DNA from: Cyanophora paradoxa CCMP329
Lineage: Eukaryota > Plantae > Glaucophyta
Reading direction: 5' to 3'
DNA: 64,000 nt
NCBI GenBank assembly: GCA_004431415.1
Contig: QPMI01000034.1
Coordinates: 30,753-94,752, forward strand
The notes beneath the pieces were generated by a model. That model worked only from the letters and a program-made list of their open reading frames with translations, made no database searches and was not told the DNA's origin. Positions 17,562-64,000 of the stretch are shown piece after piece; position 1 is the first letter of the stretch, and each line of letters opens with the position of its first letter. The position numbers and the translations under genes are program-made.

Positions 17562-17713
17562 TCTCCCACAACGGTCCGGCTGGTCTAGCGGCGTGCGAAC
17601 ACACGTCGCGTTGGCCTTGCTGATCTAACCCATGTGGGGAACATAAACGGAAAGCAAAAAGCACTTGTGCTCGATTTCTATTGACAGCACGAGTCGTCGT
17701 CTTTCCCACATCA
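17562..17713 (+). ncRNA. Box H/ACA snoRNA, copy 1 (predicted LSU rRNA pseudouridylation guide)
   Basis: Hairpin, H box (ACATAA 17641-17646), hairpin, ACA (17708-17710). Guide pockets ACGGTC/AACCCA and CAAAAAGC/CGTCGT are complementary to conserved eukaryotic LSU rRNA sequences. Confidence 0.85.
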
Positions 17714-17774
17714 TGCCTTTGCAGTATCTGCCCCCCGCTCTCCCAGTTCTGTTTTCTTTCTGGCATGCCGATGC

Positions 17775-17927
17775 CACCTCGTAACGGTCCGGCTGGTCTA
17801 GCGGCGTGCGAACACACGTCGCGTTGGCCTTGCTGATCTAACCCATACGAGGCACACAAAAAGGAAAGCAAAAAGCACTTGTGCTCGATTTCTATTGACA
17901 GCACGAGTCGTCGTCTTCCCGACAATC
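17775..17927 (+). ncRNA. Box H/ACA snoRNA, copy 2 (paralog)
   Basis: Same guide pockets; H box ACACAA 17854-17859; ACA 17922-17924. Basal stem CCTCGTA/TACGAGG replaces TCCCACA/TGTGGGG of copy 1 (compensatory change). Confidence 0.85.
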
Positions 17928-42814: not shown

Positions 42815-43170
42815 AGCGCGGTCCGGCGAGCCGCGCCGCTGCCCGCCGCGCCCCCGCCTCGCCGCCCGCCGGCTCCGGTTCGGCCGGCTGCGGCGCCAGC
42901 GCCGGAACGGTCCGGCGAGCCGCGCCGCCGCCCGCCGCGCCCCGCCTCGCCGCCCGCGGGCTCCGGCTCCAGCGCCAACGCGGTCCGGCGAGCCGCGTCG
43001 CCGCTCGGCGCCACGCGCTGCGCCCGCCATGCTGCCATCTTCGGCTCCGGCGGTCCCGCCGCGTACGGTAGCTGATAGGTGTTGTCCGGCGGTCCCGCCG
43101 CGCGCCGTAGCTGATAGGTGTTGTCCGGCGGTCCCGCCGCGCGCCTTAGCTGTTAGGTGTTGTCCCAGGC
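42815..43170. repeat. GC-rich repeat module, copy 1
   Basis: CCGGCGAGCCGCGCCGC units, then CCGCCATGCTGCCATCTT...GGTGTTGTCC, then about three tandem 33-nt CCGGCGGTCCCGCCGCG...AGCTGATAGGTGTTGT units. Confidence 0.7.
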
Positions 43171-44284
43171 TCGTCCATCCTTGCCCGAGCTCGAGCTGAT
43201 GTATGACTTCTCACGTAAAAGGTTATCTTTTCATTGATTGGCCGGGCTCGCGCATGCGCGGTTGTGGGCGGCGCCGGAACTTGAAAATGCACTAGTAGCT
43301 ATAGTACTGCACTCCCAAGCGGCCGGCAGCGACTTAGCGGGGCGACTCGGCGATGCGGGGCCGGAACATTGCGCGCGGCAACTGTCACACTTGCCAAGAT
43401 GTCACATGCACACTCCGGGTGCGCACTGCGCTCGCCGAGTCGGTCAGCGTCTTAAGCTTGCAATTGGCGCGCGCCGGCCCGGCGGCCGCGGCGCTCCGAG
43501 GCTCAGCGGCTTACTGCCGGCGCGCGACTTTAGCTGCTGGGCTTCCCCGAGGCTTTCGCCGCTTGCAGTCGCATGTTCATCTTCTTTAGAACGTACACGA
43601 GCCCGCAGGGCGCGCCCCGCTTCGAGCTGCACCCGCGGCACGCAGCGGAGCACGGGCAGGTGCCCTCGGGTTATCACGGCGTACCGCCGCGGCGGTCGCG
43701 CCGCGGGCCCTGTTAAGGCTTCCAGCCGGGGGTTAACCCGCACTAGCATCGGTGTTTTACTCAAGCGCACTAGGCCGGGCTCGCGCGCGCGAGGGGGAGC
43801 CCTGCGGCTCGAGCATGCGCGGCAGCACAAAGACGCAGTACTCCCCGCGACTTTCCGCTTTGGGATCAAGATGTACATAGTCTAAATATCTCATGAAAAC
43901 TCAACTATCATGTCTCGACGAACGTTCCGGACGATGAGCAGGGTTTCTCGATGATGTAGTAGATATGAAGATGAACTTAGAGAAGTCATGTCTAGTACTC
44001 TGGTCTAAAGACTCATGACACCGAGGATCGTCCGGAACGTTCGCGCTCGCGGCGAAAATCGGTGCACACACTCTTAAGACATTATTCTTTTAGATTGGTT
44101 CAATATTTTGTCGGCGTGACCGTCGAATGAGGGAAAGCGGCTAAGGCACGGCACCCAGGCACGGTACAGGCTCTGCTGGGGCCGGGGAAACGGCAAACGA
44201 AAGCCATTTGAGTGCTATACACGTTCTCCAAGGCAGCGGGTGCAAGAACAGGGCACAGGGCAGGTGGGGTAGGGCAGGGATGGG

Positions 44285-45205
44285 CTCCCGCCGCCCCTTC
44301 CCCCCCCGCCGCCCCCCGCCCACCGCCCCGGCCCCCGCCACGCCCGGCCGAGCAGCGCCGCCACCCACCGCGCCCCCGCCATGCCCGGCGAGCCGCGCCG
44401 CCGCCCGCCGCGCCCCGCCCCGCCCGGCGAGCCGCGTCGCCGCCCGCCGCGCCCACGTCCCGTGTGGCGAGCCGCGCCGCCGCCCGCCGCGCCCCCGCCA
44501 CGCCGGCGAGCCGCGCCCCGCCCGCCGCGCCCCCGCCACGCCGGCGAGCCGCGCCCCCGCCCGCCGCGCCGCGCGCGCCGCGCCCCGCCACGCCCGGCGA
44601 GCCGCGCCACCGCCGCCACGCCCCGCCACGCCCGGCGGGCCGCGCCGCCGCCGCCACGCCCCCGCCACGCCCGGCGGCCGCGCCGCCGCCCGCCGCGCCC
44701 CGCCCGCCCGGCGGCCGCGCCGCCGCCCGCCGCGCCCCGCCACGCCCAGCGAGCCGCGCCGGCCGCGCGCCGCGCCCCGCCACGCCCGGCGAGCCGCGCC
44801 CCGCCGCCGTGCTCCTGCTCCGTGCGGCGAGTCGCGCCGCCGCCCGCCCGCCCCGCCACGCCGGCGAGCCGCGCCGCCGCCCGCCGCGCCTCCGCCACGC
44901 CGGCGGCCGCGCCGCCGCCCGCCACGCCCCCGCCACGCCGGCGGCCGCGCCGCCGCCCGCCACGCCCCGCCACGCCGGCGAGCCGCGCCGCCGCCCGCCC
45001 CGCCCCGCCACGCCCGGCGGGCCGCGCCGCCGCCCGCCACGCCCCGCCACGCCCGGCGAGCCGCGCCGCCGCCCGCCGTGCTCCTGCTCCGTGCGGCGAG
45101 TCGCGCCGCTGCCCGCCGCGCTCCTGCTCCGCGCTGCGCCCGCCATGCTGCCATCTTAGGGTCCGGCGGTCCCGCCGCGTGCGGTGGCTGATGGGTGTTG
45201 TCCGA
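44285..45205. repeat. GC-rich minisatellite plus second copy of the 43.0-kb module
   Basis: Many degenerate CCACGCC(C)GGCG(A/G)GCCGCGCCGCCGCCCGCC units, ending in CCGCCATGCTGCCATCTTAGGGTCCGGCGGTCCCGCCGCG...GGTGTTGTCC. Confidence 0.8.
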
Positions 45206-46884
45206 TGGATCCGGTCCGCCGCCGCCGCGCTTCCGCGCCGCCGCCGCCCGGCGAGCAGCGACGCATCTGCGTGCACGTGACCGAAGGCCCGGGGCCCGCG
45301 CATGAGCAGCATGTGTAGTTTGCTCTCGCTCTCTATAGCCATGTCTATCTCTCTCTCGCCGGCGCCGCGCTTTGGCCATGGTACCGGTGGCCTCCGCGGC
45401 TGAGGCTCCGCCAGTGCTGCAGCTGGCGGCGTTCTCTGCGCTAGTCGGGTTCCGCATACTGAGCGTATGCTCGCTGGCAGCTGGCGGCGCGGGCCGAGTT
45501 GCACCGCGCCATCGATCCTGCGGCCGTGCGCGTTCTCACGGCGCTAGCGCGAAGTCCCACCAATGCTCCGATTTACACCCCGGTGGGAGTATTGCAAAGC
45601 TGGGTACGGCATCTACAGGCCTGGGCCGCGGATTGGTGGATTTCGCGATCGAAAAAAATAGCGACGACCGCGGCCTCGGCCCGCCGGCGTTCAAAAAAAA
45701 GGGCGTCGCGATCGATGCATCAGATCAACGAGCCATGCATCACGGAAGTAGTGCGCAACGAGCGCTTTCGAATGAGCCTAACCTCGCAAAAATCCTATGT
45801 GGGGATCTGGAAATTCATGTGGCGACAATTCCCAGCAAGTTTGCAACGAAATTAACTTTTTAGTAAAAAAACGATGGGGGTACAGAGCTTTTTTGAAAAA
45901 CAAACTATTGGTGCCGGTTCAGAAAACCTTTAATCGAACCGAGTCATATGTAAGTGTTGCCACTGTAGTTTAGCTTGCATTCAGGCCTTCGAGCCACTCT
46001 GTAGTATAGTGCTAGTGCGTGGGCTGAGGCTGTAGCACTTCTCAATAGCTCATAGACTTGCCGGTACCTCCGCAGTGCCTAGGACTCCTCCGGCGTTGCC
46101 GGTTCGTAGACAGATTCTGTACCCCCCCCCACGTTGTTCGATACCCCCTCAGTCCTGTAAGAAGCCCAGCTGCGACCCGTTCGTGCTACGCCTGCGCGCC
46201 TGCCGCCTAGGCATGGGGCTGGGATCACATTGGGACACTAACTAAGCCTATTTGACCCTCGCCGGGACGATCGCTGGCCTGACGGCGGTTCGACAACGAC
46301 CCGCCGCCACCCGGCGTGAACCCGCGGGAGGAGAGTGCGTCACCCTCGACGGACGTGCTAGACTACACGACCGCGTGCCCGCTGGACGCGCCGACCGGCC
46401 GGAGCACGACCTAACTGACGGAGCTGACTTCCTTGTCCTTCGCCAAACTTGTCGCGCGGCGTGCCTTGCTCTACGCAGGACACGTGCGGGAACGAACACT
46501 CGCTGCAGGCAGTGACCCGTGTCTTGCGGCTCGCTGCCCAGTGCAGGAGAGAGTGAGGCGAAATCACTCGACCTTTACGTGTAGCGACCCGTGACTTGCG
46601 GCTCGTTACGCCTAAAGGGCAACGTGTATCGGTGCGCGATCTGCACTGCACGTTGCTGTCGCTGTCGTGTCGTACTCTCGTCGCGATCGTCGTGCTCGTG
46701 CACGCGCGCTGAGAGCTCCGCAGCTGTTGACAATACTGTCAGCAGCTCGGCCAACGACACGCAGTGACTGCTCGACTGCCTCGCCTCGTAGTCGGCCACA
46801 CGGCGGCCGCGATCGCGACGCAGTACGTTACGGACACACCGGCATACGCCGCGTACGTGACACGCAGGACGTAAACGAGCAACC

Positions 46885-47605
46885 TGTACGGATCGCACCC
46901 GCTCACGTAGCGGCTGAAATCTGTACGTCGATCTTCAGAGCACCCGCTCAGAAGGTCACCGTCAACCCCTCGTCAACTTGTACGGATCGCACCCGCTCAC
47001 GTAGCGGCTGAGATCTGTGCGTCGTCGATCTTCAGAGCACCTCAGCTCAGAAGATCATCCACCCCGTCATCTATTTTTACAGATCACACCCGCTCACGTA
47101 GCGGCTGAGATCTGTGCGTCGTCGTCATTATTTTACATCTATTTTACGAACACCCTCACGTAGCGGCTGAGATCTGTGCGTCGTCGATCTTCAGAGCACC
47201 TCAGCTCAGAAGATCATCCACCCCGTCATCTATTTTTACAGATCACACCCGCTCACGTAGCGGCTGAGATCTGTGCGTCGTCGATCTTCAGAGCACCTCA
47301 GCTCAGAAGATCATCCACCCCGTCATCTATTTTTACAGATCACACCCGCTCACGTAGCGGCTGAGATCTGTGCGTCGTCGATCTTCAGAGCACCTCAGCT
47401 CAGAAGATCATCCACCCCGTCATCTATTTTTACAGATCACACCCGCTCACGTAGCGGCTGAGATCTGTGCGTCGTCGATCTTCAGAGCACCCAGCTCAGA
47501 AGATCATCCTCGACTTCGTCGCCGGTCTACGGAGCACCTCAGCTCTCAGGACCATCACCACCGTACATCTTACTTCAGATCACACCCGCTCACGCAGCGG
47601 CTGCG
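46885..47605 (+). repeat. 97-bp tandem repeat array in the retroelement 5' leader
   Basis: Unit GATCACACCCGCTCACGTAGCGGCTGAGATCTGTGCGTCGTCGATCTTCAGAGCACCTCAGCTCAGAAGATCATCCACCCCGTCATCTATTTTTACA; exact 97-nt period at 47176/47273/47370/47467; about 7 copies including partial ones. Confidence 0.95.
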
Positions 47606-47655
47606 CTCCGTTCACCGACGGTCTTCGAAATCACTCAGAGACCATCAACGTCAAC

Positions 47656-50600
47656 ATGAACCGCGACGAGCACGGCGGCTCCCGCATCCGGAACCCGGCG
47701 CGACGCACGCGTACGGCGACTCGGCTGAGATTGCGGCGACCAACCGTGCGGAGTCCTCGCAGCTACGCGGCGGAGTCGACGCAGAGCCCCCGACGCGCGT
47801 GAAGATTGCGGAGGGGCTCATCGCCACCAGCCCCGGCCAGCCCCTCAAACCTGAGGGCGTCATTACTCATATCAACGACGGCCGTGCCATTGCTGCATCG
47901 GACCCCAAGAAGTACTCGACTGAGAACGACGGCTCCCAGAAGAGCCTCGCCCTCCTTCTTGTTCTACTGCAAGCCCTGTCGGCAGGCCTCAGATCCATCG
48001 TATCGACCCTCGTGCAAGGCACCGCTGTCAAGGTCAACGCCAGGGAGGCGGCCGATGAGAGATGCCAGGAGCTCGGCAAGCGCATCCTGGCCATGAGCAA
48101 GACGGAGAGGCAGAGTTTCAATGGGCAGCGGTTGCGGGAACGCCTCAAGAAGGCCAACGCCGAACGTGAGAGCGCTGAAGCCGCACTCGATCATCCCGGC
48201 ACGATCAAGGGCCTCCCCTCCTACATGCGATTCCTCATCAGCAAGATTAGCCCCGAGGAGAGTGAGGCCTTGGACACGCGCCTCAAGTCACCTTACGACG
48301 GCAGTCCTTTACCCGACGCGCTGAAGGCCGTACACGATTTACTCCCATCCTCGACCCTCCTTCCAGACGGACAGAAGATGAAGCCCATCGACATCGTGAA
48401 GACGCTGGAGAGCCAGATCAACCGACGCGCTGGGCACAGTGGGGGATCTTACACCAACATGAACACTCAGGAGGGTCACAACCGGTACCGTAACTTCCTG
48501 AACGCCCGCGACAAGATACCTGAATTGAAGCGGATCGCCCTCGAACACGAACCCGAGGACGACGCTTCAGCAGACTTCAGGGAAATGAAGCTTGCTTCTT
48601 TCATGACCGACGCCTTCGCCGCCATACCACCTGGCCTCTTCGTCGAGGTCCGCTCGGCATCGACCGGGGAGGCTAAGTCTTCCAAGAAGATCTCTCGAGT
48701 CGAGCGGGAACAGCGACGGGAACAACGACGGGAGCAACGTGCACGACGGCAATCGCGGAGCTCAGACGACTCTGACGGCTCTGACTCCAGCTCGGGACAT
48801 TCGAAGCGCAGGAAGAGTTCAAGCCGGGCACCCCTCGGGGCGTCCGCGGTTTACGCTCATCCAAGCTCCGGACAACCGAACCCGAACTCGGCATACACGG
48901 CAGCTATACCTGCACCGGCCAACGACAAGAAGCAGACGGGGAAACCCAATTACAATTACCCGCGCGTTGAGAAAATTACTGCAATTAAACAACGGGAAGG
49001 TTACAACCGAGCAGAGAAGCCTAAACACCGCGGTACCAACCACGACTTCTACTGCTGGCGGTGCCCTGACAATTTACCGCCGGCCGAACGCCACCATTAC
49101 GCTGACGATTACCTGGAATGCCCACGGCATGACTACCGGTATAAGCTACTGGAGATGATCCAGAGCGGCGACAACAACCCAATTGTACGAATGGCGGCAG
49201 AAATCTGCAAGATTCCCACTGGCTCAAACGGACAGACGGCGCCGACGCAGCCCACGCAAATTGCAGCGGCTAACCCGACGTCGAACCTCCAATGCTTTAA
49301 CTGTCAAGGTTACGGACATCGCCAATCGGAATGCACTCAACCCAAGAAGTGCCGACTTTGTAACTCAACTGAACACCTCCAAGCAAACTGCCCCCAGAAC
49401 GGCAACCGCGACGGCGGTGGCGGCGCAGGAGGCGGTAATAAGGACACCTACCCCTGGAGTCGTGGTGACCGTGGTGGCCGCGGTGGACGAGGTGGCGGAC
49501 GAGGCGGCGGACGAGGCGGCGGTCGCGGCGGCGGTGGAGCACCTTCATCGCGCCCCCCCCTCGGCATCACTGCCAATGACAATCCTACAACGACGACGGA
49601 CGCACCAAAGACCCCGGCCACGACGCCGGCGCCTACGTGCCCGTCTGACACCACTACGCCCCTCACAACAGGTGTACCACAGACCCCGGCCACGACGCCG
49701 GCGCCCGTGGGCCCACCTGGAACTACGGCTTCATTACACACGCCGACAGTGCCAACCACTGCAACGCAGGCCCCGGCCACGATGCCGGCGCCGACGAACC
49801 CAGTGGAGACACCAGTCTTGCAAACTGTGCCGGTACACGTCGCACAGCCAGCTCCAATGGAAGAAGTGCCAGCCCCGACCACGACGTCGGCGCCAGCACC
49901 CACCTCCATGCCTACGGAACAGCAAATCGCAGAACTGGTGCAAGAAGCTAGAACGCGGGCTACCAAACCACCCTTCCAGCCCAGACCTGTTAACGTAACA
50001 CAAGCTCTATATGACTTGCAGCGAGAAGAAGTACGAGTGTCGGCAGTGACATCGACTGTCCTCGACAAGGTCAACAGAGCACTGGCTAAAATGGCCAACC
50101 TCGGAGCGCGAGCTGCCACCCCAAACCGCCCCAAGAGCAACAAGTATACAACCAAATTTGGCTTCATTCGGGAACGTATCTCTGCAATTACACAAGCCGC
50201 GGCAATCCCAGTACGGCGGATCGAAGTCGACAAGAACGCGACAAAGACCCGTTGGAATACGGACACGTGCGCTGAACACCTTCAAGGGCCTCTGGTAAAG
50301 ACGCTGCAGGACGTTACGGCGCGGGCCGCCAACCTCGATCTCGAGATCGCGGCAACGAAGGCGGCACTTACCAGCAAAGGGGGCAAGACCACAAACGTCT
50401 CGACGGCAAAGGCTCATGATGGCCAGCCACCCGTTGCCTCGACGGCGCAGAAGCCGGTAGTGGAGCACGCAACACCGGTCATCTCGCCTACGGTGAACCA
50501 GATCGTGGAGCCGGCCGAATCTACTGCTGAGTACGTAGGGCCGCTCACGACGTACCTACGAGAAGTACTGGGCTACATGCACAGACGACGCCTCGCAAAC

Positions 50601-52217
50601 CCCGTCTACTTTCGCGAAGTGCCCGGAAGTGCATGGTTCACACATGGCTTCCCTGGCTGCGACTTCCGACAGGCGTTCATCGACGCTGTCCTCTATTGCC
50701 CCCAACTGAAGCACATTACCATACTCTTCGGACACAAGGGTGCGGGACTGTGTGCGACAGCAGCGGGTGCAAGAGAGCAGGCACTGCAGAACGGCAGTAC
50801 CGACGTCGACGACGTAACGATGCTTCATCGGTACCCTATCCCTCACGAACATGTACGGCCCATCTTTCACCACGCTCTCGACTACAACGTCACCAAATTA
50901 GCTGCACCTCAACGCCAACACCGCCCGTTAGCGGAGACGGCTGGGGAGAGCGACCTTTCCACATTCCCAGACGTGATTCAGTACGAGCCTCACGGTGACT
51001 TTGGCGGCGAAACAACTTTCATTCACGAGTGTTGTGACCGGTGCACGCCGATAACAATCCAGCAGTCGGCAGCCGGAGCACTGGAGCCGCGCGAGATTCA
51101 CGGTCAGAGTCGGCAGCCTTCGAACGGACCGGCGGACCGTGCACTCCACTTGCATCTCACGACGCTTGTGGATTCACTTCGCAGCTTGGGCCAGGCCCAC
51201 CCAGCCAACGCGGTTGCGGGCCGACCTCAGTACATCACACTACTTAAACGCACGGCAGTGCAAGCATTCTGGAACGGCAACCCAGTTGCGGGAACTGACA
51301 TGGATCGACCTTGCGTACCGGACGCGCGACCCCTCAGTGGTGACCATGATCACGAACACTGGGATACGTTAGCTGAATATCCAGTCCAGCAACCCCCAGA
51401 CTTGACAGATCGACTTAATTTGACAACAGCTATCCGGGCTACAATCCTCAGGCGCACAACCTCCGCTGACCTCATACTGCTCAATGAGTGGGCGAAGCGG
51501 ACGGCCAATGCAATCAACACTGGTGCATGGCAGCAGGCCGTGAATTGGACACGGCGGGACCGACCATCCGACAACTACAACTTGGAACGGACACTTGCCC
51601 CGGCCACGGCCGGCGCAGTACCAGTTCCTACGACACGAGATATTACACCCGCCCCGGCCACGGCCGGCGCGCTCACCGTCCCTACTGCGCGAGACTCAGT
51701 ACCTGCCCCGACCACGGCCGGCGCAGTACATGTCCCGCCTCCACCACACTCGACACCCACACCAGCAATAGCTGACGGGGTAGCCCAGCCTCCTCCGACA
51801 TCACTTGAAATGCCATTGGACCGCGGTACCCAATGGACTTCAGAACAAGTATCACTGATACGAGGATGGGCCGAATCAGTACATAATCGCACACGGCGAG
51901 AAAACGTTGATCTTTGGGAACTCTACAACTGCAGCCCAACGGCGGCACTCACATGGATCGTCACCATGATGCCCCCCACGACGTACCCCACGATAGCTCA
52001 AGCAGTTCTTGACGCTTATCTGGAAACGTACCCACGGAACTCGCTCGTGCCAGAGCCGACGAACTCCTCTGTCAAATGGATGCTCGCAACTCGGAACCGG
52101 AGTCGCAACGCGAAACCTTCCATGAGCTACATGCGAAGCCAAGCTAAATGCCTGACCACGGACGCTGTCAGCATCCTGCGGCAGCGATTCCGGGCCGGAA
52201 GCAATGCGTCTTTGTGA
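47656..52217 (+). CDS. gag: Gag-containing first segment of the retroelement polyprotein
   Basis: Two CX2CX4HX4C knuckles (CFNCQGYGHRQSEC, CRLCNSTEHLQANC; 49293-49391) followed by an RGG box. The likely ATG at 47656 needs one -1 correction near 47680. Confidence 0.85.
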
Positions 52218-55200
52218 GCCCTGGCGCCCAGCAAATCTACATCCGCTGCGAGGCGGTTGGCTTTCCCGGACCATGCCCGGCAACGCCAGTCGCCCGAACG
52301 GCGCCATCACAAGGGCACGCAGCCACATGTCACCACCACTGCCAACAGCTGAACATGTTATTTTACCGACGGCACCTTTACAACCCCGACGGACAGTTCA
52401 CCAGCACTCGCGTCGAGATGACTATGAACTGTGGGACGTGTGGCAAGTACCCACTCGTGTCTTATTGCAACTACCCAGACGCCGAGGTGACAGGCTTGTA
52501 CCCCATCCGACGCCTGTGGGCCCGGACGGCCCCTTGGACCGGAGAGTAACAACTCGAGCCGAGGAGACGTTCAATGCAATCATCATGGAAGCGCTCGCTT
52601 GGTGGCCCGAGAGCCAGCTCGCCTGCAAGCATGGCTATGCCAATGTTTACGACCGCTTCATCAACCTTAACATGGAGCCGTTCGACGTACGTGCGTACAG
52701 AGTCCACGCCAACACAGAATGGTCCAGCACGCGACCCAACCAGCGGTTCAACTACGGGACCCTACGCACGGCAACTCGAACTCCAACCAGGACCGGGGAC
52801 ACGCGCAGCGCACCCCCGACACCGGCTCACGGCCCATTGGTCAGCCTCACGACGCAACCACAGCAGCACTGGCCTGAGGAAGCTCGCAATCCCCCGCGGC
52901 TGTTGAAGCCAACGACGGTCATCTCGTACCAGTCTCACGAGGCCGGAGTGGTAGACAGCCGTGGCTGCACCATACCTTACTTCGGCATCGGCGAGCACGG
53001 ATCCGCCTACGAGTATTTCAATCCAATCCGAGTCACAGCCATCTTGCGCCGAATTTACGACCCGGACGAGCAGCGGAAGTATAAGGAAGCCATGAAGATC
53101 ATCCCTGAGTCATATGACTTCATTGCAGCCCAGCTGGAGACCAGTACAACCTGGCCCCCCTCATGGACATACCCGACTGACGACGACAAGCGTAACTTTA
53201 TCGATCTTATGTACGAGCGGGAACGACGCCCGAGCCGAGCGCCTCAACGACCAGCTGGAACCAAACCCCGAACGGCGCCTGGATCCGTGGATCTGACGGC
53301 GAGCGTGAACACGGCGTATGACGCCGATTACGCCTTGGGTGAGGGCAAAGGTCCTTACATGGCGGCGGCGCTTACTGGTTACGCTCGAGCACGGGGACGC
53401 GAAGCGAACAGGACCGCCTCGAGCGCTACGCGGAAATACAAGCCACGACAAGTCCGGGTACAGACCATCGCGAACAAGATGGAAGATACACCACCGACGT
53501 CGTCATCTGAGACCCGGAACGGACACCTTCACCCCCGTTCAGGGCGACCTCGGCCGACCCCCAAGCCCCAACTCTGGACGATCCCGGGAGTGGTGTCCTC
53601 AGCCCCAGCGACAGCGTGGCCCTTGGTTATGGCACTACGAATCCCTCCAGTCTCATTACCGTCGCCCCGGCCACGGCCGGCGCGCCGCAAACTGAGACGA
53701 ATGCTACCAACGTAACAATCAACCCGAGCCCTGCATCTCCGACCCTTACGACGCCCCTGGAAGCCGCCCCGGCCACGGCTGGCGTGGCTCAACCCGGCGT
53801 TATAGCTTCAGAGCAAGCGACTCCGGACATGACCATAACTGTCAGGGAGCAGACTTTGACACTGCCAACTGACAACGAATCGACCACGACCCCCGCAACT
53901 ACCGCCCCGGCCACGGCCGGCGAGCCCTACGGCAAGGCCGGATGACCTCATCGTTGAGTCCGAAAGCCCTCCAGGGCCCGACTGGATTGAATGCCCAGGG
54001 GATTGCCGTCCCCGACTGTGGGCTCGCCCACACTCGCGCGCGTGGATATATGCACGTGAATACTGGCGATCCTGGAACGAGGAGGAGCCAACGGCAGAGG
54101 AAGATGGCTCGGGACCAATTCACATTTCCCGGATCGGACTTACCCTACTGTCACTGAGGATCCCCAGCGTTACATCCAAGTCGGCGACATTCCCGTCCCG
54201 ATTCCGGAACCTGAACCGCCACTCCCAGTCCCGCCGGAGACCGGCGCAATCGTGAGAACCACACACTTGGGCGAGGTCACTGCTGCAGTTTCACAGCGCC
54301 TCGGAGACTGTGGGGTCATACCAAGCACAATGCCCGGCTACGCAGAGGCAGCGGCTGCGGTCGACAATCCCAACCTGTTTGCAACCTATCGCAAGTACAC
54401 GCCATGGAATGCAAGTACGGACCCGTCCAAGACCGGCCTCTACCTCACAAACATTTCCACGCTGCCTGACGGACTCACGGAGCTGAACCCGGCTAACCGG
54501 CACGTCCTCGACAGACTCGTCACGTACGTCGATGTCGAGGAGCAATCAGCGATTTTGCTCAAACATACCGCCCATCTCCGCGCTGTCGCTTATGCGATCA
54601 TGAGAATTGCGGGCACAGCCGACACTACGGATAGCTTGGAAGAGACGCTGCGTCACGCATCTGTCCTCGAGCTGCTGGCCTTGATGCACAACAAGCAATA
54701 ACCCTGACGACTTCACGGCAAGGAATATTGCCTTGGCTCTTCGACGTCATGATCTCGTACGGCCGAAGCATGCGGGCACAATTCCCTACTTACTTCGAAC
54801 CGCACGGGGACTACTATGCGCCTTTCCCCACTCTCGCCGACGCGCTGACGGTCCGCATGACGGCACTGGAACGCTTAATCCTCGAGTCGCACCTGCCGCC
54901 GCCCTTCGACGACGAATTCGCGCCTTACCCCACGGCGACACCTCCAGCGCTCGATCGAGACATCGCCCTCGAGATGCGGGTGACAGCCCTGGCCAACGCA
55001 ATTCACATTGCAGCGGCTGGAGCACGCATCTACTTCCACTCGAAGCCTCGGGAGTTGGAACGGAATCACTCATGGCGCAGCCCTTGGCTTCGCTGTTCGG
55101 ATCCGTTCTCGGCAAAGCCAAATAGGCTGCTGTGGCCGACAAGCCCAGACTTCTACTTCACAATGGGAGTCGAAATGGTGGAGTACATCACGCGCGTGCT

Positions 55201-58200
55201 CAACCTGCCCTTCGGAGGCCACTTCGCGAATAGCCCCAACAGCTGGCTGGCTACCGTCGACCGGTACCTTGACCGGACACAGACGCCCCCGGAACAGGGG
55301 ACCTTGGACGTTCCCCGGAAGCCCTTCGAGCTCCACGGTGTATTACTCGACGAGTACAAACTAGCGGTGATTGAATGTAACGAGCGACGCCTCGACTACT
55401 CCGAAGACCCGCTTTCTCCACTCTGGAGAGGTCTTCAGGCGTTCCGGACCGGTGCCGAGAACTCCGGCAACGTGTTCGTGACCCATCTCTCCGCGAGGAC
55501 AGCCTTAGGGCGTGCCCGCGAGCTCGGCGACGTAGCAGCATTCCGACAGGCCCTGCGGCTCCATCTGGACCGTTACCCGGAGAGAGTACATGAGCGCGTC
55601 GGTGCTCGTAGCTACCCGAGCAGCTTCGAGCTCAGCCGTGTGGAACCGGGACCTGACCTGCAACTGTCACTGGTTGAAGGCTACCCTGAGGGCCCGTACA
55701 CCATCCGTATTCAACATCAGGAGGCGGTACTCCTCTCCAACCCCACGTTGTGGCACGCCACTGTTCTCGACGCATTGTATTGGGCGTTGAAGCGTAAATA
55801 CAACGGGGACAAATGGACGGATGCGGAGGATTGGCAGGCTCAGTGCCTGGCATACGGAATGACAAACCGCCTTCGACTGATCGACTCCCAGCCGAACACC
55901 CTAGTCCGGCTCTCCCTCGTCCGGGCGATCATGTACGGGGCCGACAAGATTCTCGGAATTTTCCAGTACTGGAACAAGTCGAAGGAGAACCTACTTGCGG
56001 ATCTTACACCCTGCGTACCGAACGATTACGTGAATCCAAGCACGGCAACCATCGACATTATGCAGGCGTACAACGTCCCATTTCCCCCGATACGTCAGAG
56101 GATCACGGAGTACGGCCTCAATTGGGACACCCGCTTCCTCCTGCGTTGGGCAGAACTGACCACGCTCCGAATCCACGATTCCATGTTCTTTACGGCCGAC
56201 GACGAGACCACACTGCGGAGTCACCCCCTCATGTTCTCAGGACGGAAACGACCGCCCCCGGCACCGGTGCAGCAACCACGTAGCACAACTTCAGGCTCAA
56301 CTGCTAAACGCGTGGGCCTGAAAAAGGGCCGCAAGACAGTAATATCGGAAGACGAGGCTGGTGACGATTGGTTTTACGAAACTGTCGACCTCAGCCGGAA
56401 CGCCCGGGCCATATTCGGTACCCGATATTACTACAAGTTCTTCGGTGCCGACATCATCGAGAACGGCTACGTTACCGACAAGTTCGAACGCGTCGGATGG
56501 TGGGGCGACCCCAGGAACGCATCCACCGCAAGCAATCATACTCAAGTGCGGGGACTCGACGACAGCGTCGATACTCAGTGGGCATTTGAGGCGGGGCACT
56601 CGGGCCTCCAGCACGGGAGGGGACAACACAACGACTTCCGCTTGTTCACGCTGTCTTACCACAAGGATCTGCCGGCACTCGAACGTCTGGAGGACCCCAC
56701 TATCCCCGAGGATAGTACGGTGCAACTCTACGACGTGACACGCTCAGACACGCGCAACGAAGTATACACGATCAACAAACAGCCGCTCGCATTCCGAGGC
56801 GTCGAATTCTTTCTCAGTACTCTCAGCTCCGCGATGGCCGAGAACATGAGATACACTCCGTGGTCTGCCGTCCTCGTGGCAGAAATGTGCAGCGCCTCGC
56901 AACCTCGGTCCTCGTTCACGCGTGACTTGACGGCATTGGAGGAGTACGTGAATACGAAGCCTGAATGGGAACACCCACTGGCAGAGAGCCAAATTCAGTA
57001 CTTCATGCACGGCGACACGAACATGGACAAGTTCATGCGGAAGCTTCCAGAGTTCAGACCGATCCACGCGCTTAACCAGCTTCGTTGGCGCGGAGCACTA
57101 CAGGCGCTCGACGGCGTGGTACGCCATCGGGCACGCAATCGTTCCAACCCGTACCTGCACGGGGTGCAGACCGTGACAGATGACGGCAATACCGCAAGAA
57201 CCGTTGCGAGATCAAGTTTACCACCTTGACAATCGCTCCCGCCAATGAGCACAACCCGTTGAATGAGCTCGGTAACTACCTCACAGCGTTCCGAAGCCCA
57301 CTCGAGCGGCCTCAGGGACATGAAATGGCTCCCCCGCTTGGCAACGGCGGACCCATGCTGGCACGTTCCACGAGTTCAACTCCCCGACGATACTGAGCGA
57401 CACCCTGGAAGTCTTCGCCAACGGCGGCCCGCGAATTTACACAAAGACGCGGACCAGGGACACCCAGGCTGTCGTTCACGTGTTCGATGCCAACAACCGT
57501 GACACTTGGCTCCAAATCGCCCGTTCGAACAGGCCACAACGGCCCGCGGACCAGCCTGCATACTTCGACTACAATCGCATACCAATTCTGCTTGAGGAGA
57601 CGATCCTACCCGGCGGCGTCTGGAAGACCATCGAGAGGCCTACTAGGCCGACGGAGGGTGCATTCATCCACGTTATCCCTTCAAGCCGGAAGTACATCAC
57701 TGGGTCCACCACTTCGCACATCACGTAGCAGCTTCAATCCGTTTGTACACGGCGTTCCCGTCGAAACAGATGCCAATCCACGACGGCCTGCTGGAGATTC
57801 TCGACGAATACGTGACTTCGAATGCGAGCCTACTACACTTCCGTGTCGACGACGACGGCAACATGACCGTGTCTCAGGAACTGCAAGACTGGTACGCCCG
57901 GGATTTTGGCACGGCAACACCACCACCCGGCGCCATGTTTGCAACGGCCTTCATGGCACTACTAGTCACGGCGATTACAACGCAACTCGCGGCAGTTGTC
58001 CGCCACGGGGCCCTCGGCAATGCCGGGCGCGCCTCCACAACAGCCAAGGAGACATGGCAACGCTACGAAGATCGCCAGTCGCAGCGTGCACACTTTCCCG
58101 CTGCCTTCGACCTCCCTGTCAACGTCATCGAGATGTTTGGACACGACGGAACCATGGTCGGCAACAGGGGCATGGACAACCTCGGCATGGGCGTGAGCCA

Positions 58201-60110
58201 ATACACGTTCAACAGGAACGAGTTCGAACGGTCCTGGCGTCATTACGAACAGCACGTGGGTCCGGAGGTACTCCTACAGTACAATGAGATCCACGCGTCC
58301 GAGGAAGATTCGATTCCCGAATTGTTTCTCCTTGACTACGGCGCAATACTGTTCTCCGACGACCTCGTGGAGCATCGTACGCGCTGGATAACGCTGGCTT
58401 ACAACGCTTCTGGCACGTCACGGGACGACCGCATCACCATGACAGCTGAACTGGCACCCCCTTGCGGTACAGCGGAGGTCTCACAGAAGCCGACGGAGCA
58501 AATCCTAGCCGTTTCGGGCCCCACCTCTACATCGGTGACGACGAGGACGGAGCTCCTCCCGGACCATTTGAGGGCGTCGGGTTGTCCATCAACCCGCTGC
58601 GCGGCGCTCTACAAGTCGACCCCCGATACCCGCGGACGTACCTGTACGACCAGGCGACGGGGACGATGGAGCAGCCCAGGCTGGTACGACGGCAGAACGC
58701 GGCCGCCGCGAATCCAAGTCTAGCCGGTACGAAGCCGAGGCCGAAGCGCATGAAGGAGACAGACCTCCCGAACGACGGCGAGAAGGAGCACAAATGGGCC
58801 CTGTGGATCACACCGCGAACAATTGACGGTGCTCGGGTTGGCGGCAAGACGCCCGTCGTGATTGACAGGGGTGACACGGCTCGGGCACTTCGCCTTTGTC
58901 GCTTCGACGTCGCACCCGAGTTCAAGCCCCGTCTGCCCCAAACAGGAGTTCACCGCGTTCGCTTCCGGCGCGTCGCCCGAACACCACCGGTAGCGGGCAG
59001 CGACAGCGACACCACAAGCACGACTTCTCGAACTTCGGCACTAGCTCCACGCGGAAGTAAAGGAGCCCTCCCGCCTACCTTCTACTTCCGCGCACACTAC
59101 CGTGACCTCTCCCAAACGCCTGTGGACACCTCGTACACGGAGTACAGCTGGGAACGCTTCGCGGCACACGGTCAGTCTCACGAGTCCATCCCCGTACTCT
59201 GGCCAGACCTCTGGGACGAAGACGGAACGAACTTCAGGACTGAATACGATTTGTATGACTGGAGCGCATTCCGAACACCGCATCAGCTCAATGCTGACGC
59301 CCTCGTGTCATTGGCTGAGGATCTGCGAGCACGGCCGCCTGACCTCTCCAACTCGGCGGGAGCCTCCTTGGACGTCGTGCGCACACGCGCCCTGTTCACT
59401 CGCATGGCGTTCATCATGAACACTTTGGGGTTCACCGCGTGGGACGCGGTCAAACACGCCTCGCTCGTCTCCATCCATCGGGACCGCGCTCGATTTTACT
59501 TCAACTCGATCCTGCAGGGCGACACCCGCCTACCTCACCAGTGGAAGACGCTGGTCAGCTACTTGCGCGAGGGCCTCAGTCGCCACGGCCATCATTACGC
59601 GGAATACGACACGCTCGTCGACTTCGATCCCAACCCTGACTCGGATGAGAGCATCGCTTACATCTGGTTTGGCCGGAAGACCAGCGTACACGCCCAATAC
59701 CTCACAAAATCCCCGAGACGAGGACTCGGATTCAGCCGGCAGGACCACAGCACTCGTCCTAGCAGCGGCCCGGTGCCGTCCAACAGCACCCGCCTGATTC
59801 CAAACCGACCTCGAACCTTCGCGGCGGTACATGTTTTCAACAGAGCACATGAATCGGTCTCCAAGGTGGAGAAGACTGCCCGCATCCGGGTTGCCCGCCT
59901 CCCACCTGACGCCATCTCATCGTCACGACCTTTGACGACGCCAGTGGAACGGAGCTACCAGACAGCACTTCGTGTCCGCACGGCAAGAATGCTCGGTTGG
60001 CTGGGTGACATCGTGTCTCCTAACGACATACCTACAGCCGAGGATACGGCAATAGGAAGTCGAATCGCTCAGCTGACAAAACCCGACCGGACAATGAAGC
60101 AACGGATTGC
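52190..60110 (+). CDS. Uncharacterised cargo region of the retroelement polyprotein (chain of overlapping frames)
   Basis: ORFs 52148-52549, 52204-53715, 53616-53945, 54252-54701, 54728-57229, 57480-57728, 57743-58723 and 58462-60366 plus short bridging frames tile the region without gaps and read as globular protein. Confidence 0.75.
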
Positions 60111-60480
60111 AGATGGTCGCATCTGCGTGTCGGTGCGACTCGGGTCCTATGCACCAGGACGGAAAGTCGGACCGTCCGTCAAAACTCTGGCGTTGGTGGA
60201 TACGGGCGCCGCAGCTGACGTGATTGACGGAGACCTCGCTGCGCGCATCGAGGGCCTCCGTTACAGCCGCGCGCCGCCAGTACAACTGACCGGATTTGGC
60301 GACGACATGACGGCTTACGCTCGCATCGCCTACATGGCGGTCATGATTGGTCCGTACGGTCGGTGAGAGAGGTCCTAGTGGTGGACAAGGGCCTCATGGG
60401 GTCTACCCAAATGCTCCTTGGATTGGCGACGCTCATTGCCATGAACGCTCACATCTCGCTCGACCGACTAACTGGGGAAT
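60111..60480 (+). CDS. Retropepsin-type aspartic protease domain
   Basis: LALVDTGAAADVI (DTG at 60199-60207), flap-like LTGFG; after a -1 correction near 60353, VLVVDKGLMGSTQMLLGLATL. Confidence 0.9.
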
Positions 60481-60531
60481 GACGATCACGGCACCTGACG
60501 CCGACAATGGCGAACGATACCATGTCCCTTT

Positions 60532-63500
60532 TTGCTTGCGGACCAGACCGACGGGGGCGTTCTGGTCCGCCTCGCCCAAGATGTCACCGTCGGGCCAGGC
60601 GAAGCTCTCGTTCGCTGTTACGTCTCGACGGGCCCTCAAGACGCGACTGACGATGCGCCGGAGATGCTCCTCACGCCGCCGCCGCACATTGTTGGAGACG
60701 ACGACGGAGCCGACGACCCCGGTGAAGGAGATGAACCGCGTCATCTTGTCCCTCACCAAATACATCGACGTCCTCGAGGAGGAGCTTTCCTCGCTCAGGT
60801 CTGCAATCCTCAACGCCGACCCGTCCGCTTGAAAGCGGGGACCGTCATCGCGGAGGCGGAATTCGGCAAGTGGCCCGAGAGCGAGTTCCGACCCCACGAC
60901 GACGTCTATCGATACCCGACGGGTTCTTACAAGACCTGGTCGAGTGACGAGAAGCGCAAGTTCCCCATCTCTTCCATCGCCGTCCAAATCCTCTCCAATG
61001 TGCAACCTGTGATTGTACCTGGGCGATCACAGCCTCGACGTTACGTATCCCGAGTGCACGAACAGTACCCCTCTGTTTTTGCACGGCCACCACAACCCCA
61101 GACCGAGGACCAAGGCCTAGACCCCGCTCACAGAGCGGCGCCGACGCCCCGAGTCCTCACTTCCGAAGCTCAAACCCAACTCTCACGCTTTGTGACTGCG
61201 TTCGTCACGCGATACATCCGAGAATCACGTGCGATTCTGACGCCATCGGAGATCAACGAGTTGTGCAAGATCTTCGAACCCCACTTTGCCGATACCTATC
61301 GGCAAGGCGGGCCCCTCCTCAGCCCTGTATGCATCACGTTTGCCCCGACCACGCCGTCGGCGCAACCGCGTTGCATCACCATCTCCTCCGCTTCACCTGC
61401 CGAACCCCACGCAATGGAACCGCCTTCGAGCGCCAATGCCACTCCCCCACCACAGACGGAGGAGGAAGTCCGACAACTCGTCGACGATCTCATGCAGCCG
61501 TCCAAAGACGACAACGATGTGACGGAGGAGGAGCGTGACCAACTACGTAGCCTCTTCACACGGATGGCGCACTGCTTCGCGCAACGCATCAACCCCAAAG
61601 AGCTACTGAAGTACCGTCACAGCATCCGACTCCTCCCCGGCGTACCTACGAAGCATCTGCCTTTGTACAGCGTACCCCGGCGCCTCTCTCCTCCTGCTGA
61701 GAAGGCGGCCAAAGCCGAAATCGAACGACTGCTGCAAGATGGTCTGATCGAACCCTCCCAAGCTGGATACGGTTCCCCAGTGGTACTGGCGCCCAAGAAG
61801 GACGGGACAATGAGATTTTGCGTCGATTACCGCAAGCTGAATTCGCTCACGGAGCGCGACGTCTTCCCTCTCCCGAGAATAGACGATCAACTCGAACGCC
61901 TGCAAGGCGCGACGTACTTCTCGACGTGTGACGCCACCTCCGGGTTCTGGCAGCTTGAACTCGACGAAGAATCCAGGCCTTTGACGACGTTTATCGTACC
62001 CTGGGGTATGTACCAATGGCGAGTTACCCCGTTTGGTATTACGAACGGACCAGCGGCGTTCTGTCGAGCAGTGACATCGATCTTGGGCAATCTGCTGTCA
62101 ACAAGTGTTGTCGCTTACGTTGATGACCTCACGGTCCACTCCCCGACGGCCTCACAACACCTTGTCGACCTTGAGGCGTTCTTCGCCGCGATCGAGCGAG
62201 GAAACCTCAAGCTCAAACCGTCCAAATGCCGTTTCATGGTGAAAGAGATCGACCTACTCGGACACCGTGTCAGCCGCAACGGCGTGAAGATGGACAAGAC
62301 CAAGATGGCCCTCATCGAGAAGACCCAGGAAAAAGATCTCGGAACTGTCGAGTCCATTCGCAGCTTCATCGGCATGACTGGATTCTACAGACGGTTCATT
62401 CGCAACTACGCGAAGCGGGAACTGCCCCTACGCGACCTAGTCACGCGAGCAACACGAGCTGACTCGCTGACGGTCACCTGGGACGATGACGCTCGACGGG
62501 CGCTGGACGACCTCAAGGCCGCCATCATGGAGGATGTCGCACTACTCTTACCCGACTTTGCCAAACCATTCGTCATCCACACGGACTGGAGCAAGCGCGC
62601 CATGGGGGCGGTCCTCATGCAGGCTGACGACTGCGGACGAGAGCGTCCCATCGCTTTCATCAGCAGGACCCTGACTGCGACGGAGCGCAAGTTTCAAAGT
62701 CCGACGGAAGGGGAATGCATCGCGGTACTCTGGGCGGTGAAAGTGTGGAGCCATTACTTCGAGTGCGGGCACCCATTTACAGTCCGGACCGATCACTCGG
62801 CACTCCAATGGTTGAAGTCACAGGACGTGACGAACAACAAGGCGCTCTGTCGAGCGGCGCTGGGACTTCAGGGCTACAACTACACCATCGAGTACCGCGC
62901 GGGGCGCACCAACGTTGTTGCAGACTTCGAGTCGCGTCTGGAACCGTCACACGACCTCTTCCTCCCAGGAGCGGGTGACGGCTCAGACCTCACGACTGAC
63001 ATCCCCGACGGAGCTCGAGGATTCGGTGTACCCCGAGGCGATCTCGACGACCCAACCCAGCTCTTCGCGGTAGCCCCCACGGACACGCTCGACGGGCCAG
63101 CATGGGCGTTGGCGCCGGGAGCGAAGCGGCGTCGCCAAGCGCCCCCTGTAGACGAGCATCGACCCGTTGGCCAACGGCTCGGTCCCTCCTCTACAGCACC
63201 CCAGCCGCCGACGTCACCCCCCAGTTCGCGACGGCGAATTCGGCCCGACGGCGACAGTGACACCGGTGACGAGGACGAGAGTGCACAGCCCCCTCCGCCC
63301 CGACGCACTCGCACTGAGCCTTCGCTACCACCCCACGCGGACGGAGCTCAGTCTCAGGGACAAGAGGGCTGCCCAGCCCCCGTGCCCCCTTTCCCGAAGC
63401 GACCACGTGGACGCCCGCGGAAACTCCCCTCCTCCCCCTCTAAACGACTCGTACTTGCGAGCTTTGGAATCCGAACGAGATCGGAAACGCCTCCAGGCGC

Positions 63501-63588
63501 AAGCTGGCCCTTCTACCTCGTCCGTCGGCAACGGAATTCCCGCTCCACCTCCGCGCGACCCGCTCACCGAGCGGCTTGCACGTGGTGA
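60532..63588 (+). CDS. pol: Pol: reverse transcriptase and RNase H, Ty3/Gypsy type
   Basis: SPVVLAPKKDGTMRFCVDYRKLN, FPLPRIDD, DATSGFWQ, TPFGITNGPA, YVDD (62116-62127); RNase H HTDWS, ECIAV, RTDHSAL, NVVADFESR. Confidence 0.97.
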   Translation: MLADQTDGGVLVRLAQDVTVGPGEALVRCYVSTGPQDATDDAPEMLLTPPPHIVGDDDGADDPGEGDEPRHLVPHQIHRRPRGGAFLAQVCNPQRRPVRLKAGTVIAEAEFGKWPESEFRPHDDVYRYPTGSYKTWSSDEKRKFPISSIAVQILSNVQPVIVPGRSQPRRYVSRVHEQYPSVFARPPQPQTEDQGLDPAHRAAPTPRVLTSEAQTQLSRFVTAFVTRYIRESRAILTPSEINELCKIFEPHFADTYRQGGPLLSPVCITFAPTTPSAQPRCITISSASPAEPHAMEPPSSANATPPPQTEEEVRQLVDDLMQPSKDDNDVTEEERDQLRSLFTRMAHCFAQRINPKELLKYRHSIRLLPGVPTKHLPLYSVPRRLSPPAEKAAKAEIERLLQDGLIEPSQAGYGSPVVLAPKKDGTMRFCVDYRKLNSLTERDVFPLPRIDDQLERLQGATYFSTCDATSGFWQLELDEESRPLTTFIVPWGMYQWRVTPFGITNGPAAFCRAVTSILGNLLSTSVVAYVDDLTVHSPTASQHLVDLEAFFAAIERGNLKLKPSKCRFMVKEIDLLGHRVSRNGVKMDKTKMALIEKTQEKDLGTVESIRSFIGMTGFYRRFIRNYAKRELPLRDLVTRATRADSLTVTWDDDARRALDDLKAAIMEDVALLLPDFAKPFVIHTDWSKRAMGAVLMQADDCGRERPIAFISRTLTATERKFQSPTEGECIAVLWAVKVWSHYFECGHPFTVRTDHSALQWLKSQDVTNNKALCRAALGLQGYNYTIEYRAGRTNVVADFESRLEPSHDLFLPGAGDGSDLTTDIPDGARGFGVPRGDLDDPTQLFAVAPTDTLDGPAWALAPGAKRRRQAPPVDEHRPVGQRLGPSSTAPQPPTSPPSSRRRIRPDGDSDTGDEDESAQPPPPRRTRTEPSLPPHADGAQSQGQEGCPAPVPPFPKRPRGRPRKLPSSPSKRLVLASFGIRTRSETPPGASWPFYLVRRQRNSRSTSARPAHRAACTW

Positions 63589-64000
63589 GCGAGACAAGGC
63601 GAAGACGACAACCAAGCAGCAACGCCGCGAGTCAGAGGAGCAGTACAAGCAAGCCCTCGATAACCGCCGCGAGCGGCTGTCAGACCAGGCCAAGAGTCGT
63701 CACGATGCCAACCGCCGCTCGTGCAACCGACCGGAACCGCCGACCAAGTCGACGCGACGCGAAGCGAGGAACGCCGACTGGGAAGCGTGGAAGCAGTCAG
63801 CAGACACCCTCAGCGGGCCGCAGACCTGCCCCCTCGCCTCCCAGGGAGGAGATCTCGATCCTCTCGCCACTCCATTGCGCCCCCCGCCGTTCTCGACGTC
63901 GCCGACGAAGCTGAGTACGAGGCGTACTTACAGCAGCAACGCGACTCTGGAATTCCTCAGCCTACTCCGATGAGCACCGACGCTGTCGCGCCGCTGGACA

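Follow-up and report, generated by a model that had tools for sequence, protein, structure and literature searches.

Here we describe a retroelement that runs along the plus strand of a 64,000-nt stretch of the genome of the glaucophyte alga Cyanophora paradoxa CCMP329 (contig QPMI01000034.1, positions 30,753 to 94,752; the whole stretch is hereafter the window, and its own coordinates are used throughout) from ~47.4 kb to the window end at 64000. The element is a young, multi-copy and recently active retrotransposon of the Ty3/Gypsy type, with other copies on at least five further contigs, namely tig00020903, tig00000404, tig00020904, tig00020510 and tig00020952. Between the zinc knuckles of its Gag and its protease it carries an interval of 10,807 nt, the second CCHC knuckle ending at 49391 and the DTGA motif of the protease starting at 60199. 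We conclude that this 10.8 kb region is probably an integral, translated part of the first open reading frame (ORF1) of a giant element. ORF1 reads in the order Gag with nucleocapsid (NC), four modules that we call X1 to X4 (together X), and protease (PR), and pol lies downstream in the -1 frame. A giant in-frame insert of this kind between Gag and protease has been described earlier only for the 'Burro' elements of planarians.

The insert consists of four globular-looking modules joined by linkers rich in P, T and A, and it is fused in frame to its neighbors at both ends. On the 5' side an ORF at 47358-52214 extends without a break over gag and X1 as far as X2, and on the 3' side an ORF at 58450-60363 is continuous from X4 into the protease. 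The parts of ORF1 are as follows, with lengths in amino acids (aa):

48093-49292, plus strand: N-terminal part of Gag, counted from the first ATG in frame (48093), in the ORF 47358-52214.
49293-49391, plus strand: nucleocapsid with two CCHC zinc knuckles (49293-49334 and 49350-49391; Pfam zf-CCHC, E=5e-7).
49392-49960, plus strand: linker 1, G/R-rich and then P/T-rich, with three TPATTPAP-type repeats.
49961-51580, plus strand: module X1, ~540 aa, orphan, in the same unbroken ORF as gag, with an HECCDRC cluster at 51024.
51581-51790, plus strand: linker 2, made of 54-nt tandem repeats encoding APATAGA.
51791-53520, plus strand: module X2, ~575 aa, orphan, with a Cys/His cluster at 52328-52441.
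53521-53900, plus strand: linker 3, P/T/A-rich, with APATAGA motifs.
53940-58460, plus strand: module X3, ~1,500 aa, an orphan family found in three Cyanophora families.
58461-60140, plus strand: module X4, ~550 aa, orphan, fused in frame to the protease in the ORF 58450-60363.
60187-60525, plus strand: retropepsin (Pfam), DTGA at 60199, broken at 60354 and 60464 by steps of one base.

Across the three plus-strand frames, a stop-free path of 3,721 codons can be followed from 49392 to 60532, where ~113 stops are expected from composition; the minus-strand frames hold 89-127 stops over the same stretch. Codon position 2 is GC-poor along this path, codon-usage scores trained on the element's own long unambiguous ORFs track it, and no introns are required to read it. 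A first-pass annotation, made from the sequence alone, had proposed ~10.8 kb of intronless, same-strand coding sequence between the Gag knuckles and the protease, and its coordinates were right.

The copy in the window is not a single ORF. The path changes frame at 13 steps, 11 within the interval and two within the protease (~52150, 52480, 53520, 53900, 53940, 54080, 54640, 57196, 57350, 57665, 58462, 60354 and 60464); X2 is read in the frame order mod0, mod2, mod1, changing near 52150 and 52480, and X3 is crossed by steps at 53880-54080, 54640, 57196, 57350 and 57665. These 13 changes between 52150 and 60464 could be the mark of a pseudogene copy in decay, whose long reading path would be a relic, and two copies on record (P0007 and P0012) have private frame breaks of their own that are compatible with error or decay. 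The steps in the window, however, each consist of one missing base and all shift the frame the same way, and the path holds no nonsense codon. Six steps could be compared with another copy, and at each of them the break is absent from that copy and falls in a run of C that is one base shorter in the window than that copy's reading needs. For this work the frame-shifted pieces of the window were searched apart, with unbroken gene models from other contigs as continuous references: P0004 reads unbroken through the pieces D-E-F-G, P0011 and P0013 read unbroken through F-G-protease, and the copies are 97-100% identical in protein. Taken together, the uniform direction, the absence of nonsense codons, the shortened C runs and this identity make consensus or assembly errors the most likely source of the breaks, and we hold decay to be very improbable. 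The assembly itself was built from PacBio RSII reads with Canu and Quiver and then corrected by Illumina majority, a correction that is poor where reads map to multiple places (PMC6704402). A separate observation concerns the gene model P0005 (tig00000404), whose last 21 aa match the minus strand of the linker between X2 and X3 (53553-53615, 90% identity); this copy may be rearranged, or its contig may hold an inverted assembly artefact.

The pol region places the element among Ty3/Gypsy retrotransposons:

60532-62878, plus strand: pol in the -1 frame, comprising a segment after the protease, reverse transcriptase (RT; 61792-62272) and RNase H (62482-62878), by Pfam.

Here Pfam matches RVT_1 (4.7e-34), RT_RNaseH (4e-30) and also RT_RNaseH_2, and the best PDB match is the Ty3 RT/RNase H structure 4OL8 (E=1.5e-57), with Ty3 Gag-Pol 7Q5B at ~1e-57. 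With Ty3 and ordinary Ty3/Gypsy elements (Metaviridae) the element thus shares both the type of RT/RNase H and the order gag(CCHC)-PR-RT-RNase H. The protease is matched by Pfam gag-asp_proteas and Asp_protease_2 (E ~3e-4) only on the unbroken copy P0013, where the gag-asp_proteas match (E=2.6e-4) lies under the gathering score, and in Gag Pfam recognises the knuckles only, with no capsid domain. The beginning of the pol frame (60540-60900; GVLVRLAQDVTVGPGE ... PVRLKAGTVIAEAEF) resembles the beta-rich segment that lies between PR and RT in many Gypsy elements, and contains an acidic insert mid-way.

Against this conventional background it is the interval upstream of the protease that differs. 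We compared the element with 55 Ty3/Gypsy relatives of its RT from metagenomes (30-49% identity), none of which has X-like sequence. In the ten that have both motifs, knuckle and PR motif are 150-1,306 nt apart, as opposed to 10.8 kb in the Cyanophora element, and the 17 relatives with a knuckle all have it 1.1-2.4 kb ahead of their RT match, as opposed to 12.3 kb. Next to the 0.15-1.3 kb that separates knuckle and protease motif in the RT relatives, the insert is unusual, and the earlier suggestion of an uncommonly long gap for Ty3/Gypsy holds.

Within the insert, the alternation of P/T-rich linkers (~49420-49960, 51580-51790 and 53520-53900) with aromatic-rich blocks that the first-pass annotation had noticed is also seen by composition. 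Short motifs are restricted to the linkers (49614-49800, 51600-51730 and 53667-53900), with three occurrences of TPATTPAP and about six, variants included, of APATAGA, and a linker of the gene model P0010, from one of the diverged families discussed below, has comparable A-P-S/T-A-x-x-P units. It is possible that the TPATTPAP and APATAGA motifs are sites of protease cleavage or of modification. No 2A-like skipping peptides were found in the insert. Internal duplication was considered and ruled out by blastp among the pieces and by hhalign of the X3 profiles mutually and against X1.

Three sequence features singled out earlier fared differently. The string WTSEQVSLIR is present at 51834-51863, at the start of X2, but its Myb-like label was not borne out, with no Pfam match at E<=5 across 49998-52214. 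CHHHC at 52328 and CGTC at 52430 are both there as a sequence motif, in a frame other than that of the ORF before them. Likewise present is the hydrophobic stretch at 57932-58000, in X3, which is the only one in the insert with a Kyte-Doolittle mean above 1.5; its counterpart in two diverged families, however, is occupied by K, H, R and Q. Because the position is polar or charged in those families, the stretch would not be a membrane anchor and appears instead to be an amphipathic helix. A membrane or Env-like reading of X was rejected for lack of a signal peptide and of a credible membrane segment.

Comparative evidence bears above all on X3. An exhaustive phmmer search with 864 of its residues (54635-57226) against 1.84 billion protein representatives returned three Cyanophora clusters only, namely one 100% identical protein and two diverged ones, every named member being a Cyanophora paradoxa gene model from EukProt. 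X3 is 43% identical to P0002 over 141 aa (E=5e-29) and ~30% identical further along, and 24-27% identical to P0003/P0010 over ~600 aa (E=1.5e-20). Homology is detectable and collinear back to 54309 (pairwise E of 0.003, with matching spacing), and dozens of residues are invariant across the families. Both diverged families look repeat-associated, P0003 and P0009 lying on two contigs; together the diverged families occupy tig00021720, tig00000842 and tig00020848. Judged from these alignments, X3 appears to be an orphan family whose amino-acid sequence is constrained in three or more diverged element families of C. paradoxa.

This conservation bears directly on the possibility that X lacks a function and is stuffer, if not in full then in X1, X2 and X4: an expanded spacer that is open only so that protease and Pol can be translated. 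The 24-43% identity and the many invariant residues of X3 over three families are unexpected of a neutral spacer; moreover, the blocks are globular and aromatic-rich in composition, and the reverse transcription of an additional 10.8 kb comes at a cost. On the other hand, the linkers are low-complexity and repetitive, the searches made returned no homologue of X1, X2 or X4, and structure confidence is very low, X3 alone having been modelled. We regard a stuffer as unlikely for X overall, and as plausible for X1, X2 and X4 but not for X3.

Domain searches gave no name to any module, as the first reading of the sequence had anticipated. Pfam at E<=0.01 and at E<=5, PHROGs and NCBIfam, run on every module as well as on the unbroken copies, recovered the knuckles, the protease and RT/RNase H only, and PDB searches by sequence and by two profiles returned nothing for X. 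With X3 profiles, no relatives turned up on contigs of metagenomes, of IMG/VR or of prokaryote genomes, and the same held for an IMG/VR contig scan with parts of X1 (50520-51579), X2 and X4. Two X3 alignments of four rows each were given to AlphaFold2, and the models, with predicted local distance difference test (pLDDT) scores of 31 and 35, are unusable. In word-indexed protein searches X1 and X2 had no match, not even to themselves, a result that speaks neither way. Gene models of the window itself for X1 and X2, looked for by their possible ATG starts, were absent from the protein collection.

These searches also weigh on whether X is foreign cargo, that is, one or more genes of the host, a virus or another transposable element that an ancestral element captured, or that inserted into it, and that are now carried in frame. 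Acquisition of this sort has precedent, as giant LTR (long terminal repeat) elements do acquire host-like domains (BIR, BCL2-like, MATH and ankyrin in Burro; PMC6431247). Furthermore, the N-terminal 330 aa of P0010 show no similarity to X1 or X2, from which module content may differ between families. No module, however, bears the signature of a transposase, of a second RT or of any other known domain, which also speaks against the known nested element that had been raised as a way in which the proposal could fail. The 864 residues of X3 have no relative beyond multi-copy Cyanophora loci in the exhaustive search, the metagenome, viral and prokaryote scans with X3 and the viral scans with parts of the other modules were negative, and the insert is seamless and in frame, its X3-X4-PR part being found in other copies on record. 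We consider captured cargo improbable. A nested element, or junk, is likewise disfavored because the downstream half of the region (pieces D to G and the protease) recurs in other copies and X3 is kept in three diverged families.

Extra protein between nucleocapsid and protease is familiar from betaretroviruses, which encode a dUTPase there; the Cyanophora insert is ~25 times the size of that dUTPase, and its fold is not recognised. Closer in scale are the Burro/GYPSM1 elements of planarians, in which a typical CCHC Gag is followed by thousands of in-frame codons before PR-RT-RNase H (Grohme 2018; PMC6431247). Burro ORF1 is 4,873-5,140 aa long, the elements are multi-copy, and the extra part is modular (PMC6431247). 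Compared by description, both systems thus place thousands of extra in-frame codons between knuckles and protease (~3,600 in the Cyanophora element), and the first-pass annotation was too strong in proposing an undescribed system. The contents differ, however. Burro modules are recognisable (AIR1, Smc, MATH, BIR, ankyrin, BCL2-like, SUMO-like and Env-like), whereas those of Cyanophora have no Pfam match at E<=5; Burro has an Env-like module, whereas the Cyanophora insert has no membrane or Env-like segment; Burro carries PR, RT, RNase H and integrase in the same giant polyprotein, whereas the Cyanophora pol is in the -1 frame; and the host of Burro is an animal, the present one a glaucophyte alga. 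A different likeness is to CERV of the Caenorhabditis elegans element Cer1, an orphan, fast-evolving protein with no homologue outside its host genus that serves the element's RNA biology (PMC10309623). Like X, CERV is orphan, element-encoded and lineage-specific; it is 517 aa long, made from a spliced mRNA and encoded mostly downstream of pol (PMC10309623), whereas X is seven times larger and in frame between NC and PR. A literature search found no published description of the Cyanophora element.

How much of X would be made depends on how pol is reached. In the gene models of other copies, the protease frame continues past PR as R/S/T-rich sequence to a stop at 60829, and the RT frame is open from 60499, one base back, the frame relation being equal in other copies. 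Within this overlap (60499-60829), C CCU UUU is the sole in-frame X XXY YYZ heptamer, and it heads the following candidate:

60526-60570, plus strand: candidate -1 ribosomal frameshift signal, consisting of C CCU UUU (60526-60532), a 5-nt spacer and a 10-bp stem (60538-60547/60561-60570).

We lean towards reading 60526-60570 as the frameshift site, with confidence limited because codon statistics leave the two frames indistinguishable within the overlap and because the fold of a 101-nt sequence around the site is no better than that of shuffles (z=-0.78). A pairing between the loop and downstream sequence (GGGCG with CGCCC) is also possible, noted by eye only. Judged from the frames, gag, X and pro likely form one ORF and pol is likely made through -1 frameshifting. 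In alpharetroviruses, gag and pro form one ORF and pol is expressed via a -1 frameshift; the Cyanophora element resembles this type in that protease ends the gag ORF and in the slippery heptamer and stem predicted before pol.

If pol is indeed reached by a -1 shift just past the protease, X would be produced at the level of Gag, and in the same amount as Gag because it lies upstream of the shift. A Gag with an extra tail of ~400 kDa could hardly assemble into a closed particle, and from this we infer that the protease cuts the linkers. We favor the reading, already put forward in the first-pass annotation, of accessory proteins cut out by the element's own protease. The embedded protease would act in the linkers, early or in cis, freeing Gag and NC for assembly and releasing X1 to X4 as soluble accessory proteins that would act in the cytoplasm or nucleus, handling the element's RNA or particles or interfering with host control. 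More specifically, and only tentatively, X3 and perhaps X1, X2 and X4 might be new retroelement proteins with activities of their own, for example an enzyme or a counter-silencing factor, equimolar with Gag and cut from a Gag-X-PR precursor of ~4,200 aa; such a life style of an LTR element would be specific to glaucophytes and separate from that of Burro.

Several points weigh against this interpretation. Linker cleavage, the stoichiometry argument and frameshifting are predictions only; homology that would indicate function is lacking for every module, and both AlphaFold models failed. The presence of the region in related copies, a point raised at the outset, stands for pieces D to G and the protease, and comparison supports X3 and X4 but not X1 or X2. 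X4 is backed by near-identical copies alone, the word-indexed search having matched only P0011, P0012 and P0013 at 99-100% identity, and the two other X3 families are known without their placement beside gag or PR. Furthermore, PR and Pol downstream keep the frame of X open in any case, so openness alone is no proof of separate functions for X1, X2 and X4. Finally, the LTRs and the integrase lie outside the window or go unrecognised within it.

Two further features belong to the element, one at either end of the part in the window:

46880-47509, plus strand: 97-bp tandem repeats (found with Tandem Repeats Finder) in the 5' leader upstream of gag.
62879-64000, plus strand: P-rich tail beyond RNase H, with an AT-hook-like KRPRGRPRK at 63397-63423.

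The leader array comprises about six units of 97 bp that are up to 99% alike, and its repeat unit also appears, in translation, as the last 26 aa of P0002, a gene model of a diverged family that lies on a different contig. The tail runs for more than 235 aa and is disordered-looking. In the 1.1 kb past RNase H, up to the window end at 64000, there is no HHCC motif and no Pfam match to an integrase, and RNase H and integrase may be separated by a further insert. The region at 45.3-46.9 kb is not repeated inside the window, the element's 3' end lying beyond it, and a simple search for a tRNA-Met primer site was negative. Directly upstream of the element (42830-45213) are very GC-rich tandem arrays with units of 38-39 bp and 73 bp; an 84-nt unit found at 43014 and at 45130 (89% identity) flanks the array at 44.3-45.1 kb. 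Elsewhere in the window, a host region of lower GC (17570-17924) has a direct repeat of ~150 nt, whose two copies lie 213 nt apart and share 88-95% identity. LTR elements have been put at 1.77% of the C. paradoxa genome.

As a rule LTR retrotransposons are compact, and few carry additional conserved domains. If an in-frame insert of several thousand codons between Gag and protease did arise a second time, independently, in the Cyanophora element, then giant polyproteins are no planarian oddity; the present case comes from a deep-branching alga, with an insert made wholly of orphan modules. It poses a testable problem as well, that of how particles assemble when every Gag carries ~400 kDa of extra protein. 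For those who work with the genome of this alga, at least 13 Cyanophora gene models in the EukProt set that match the region are fragments of the element, and the locus suggests that one-base homopolymer errors linger in repeats of the current assembly. As for X3, it is a conserved orphan family whose function could reveal new interactions between element and host.

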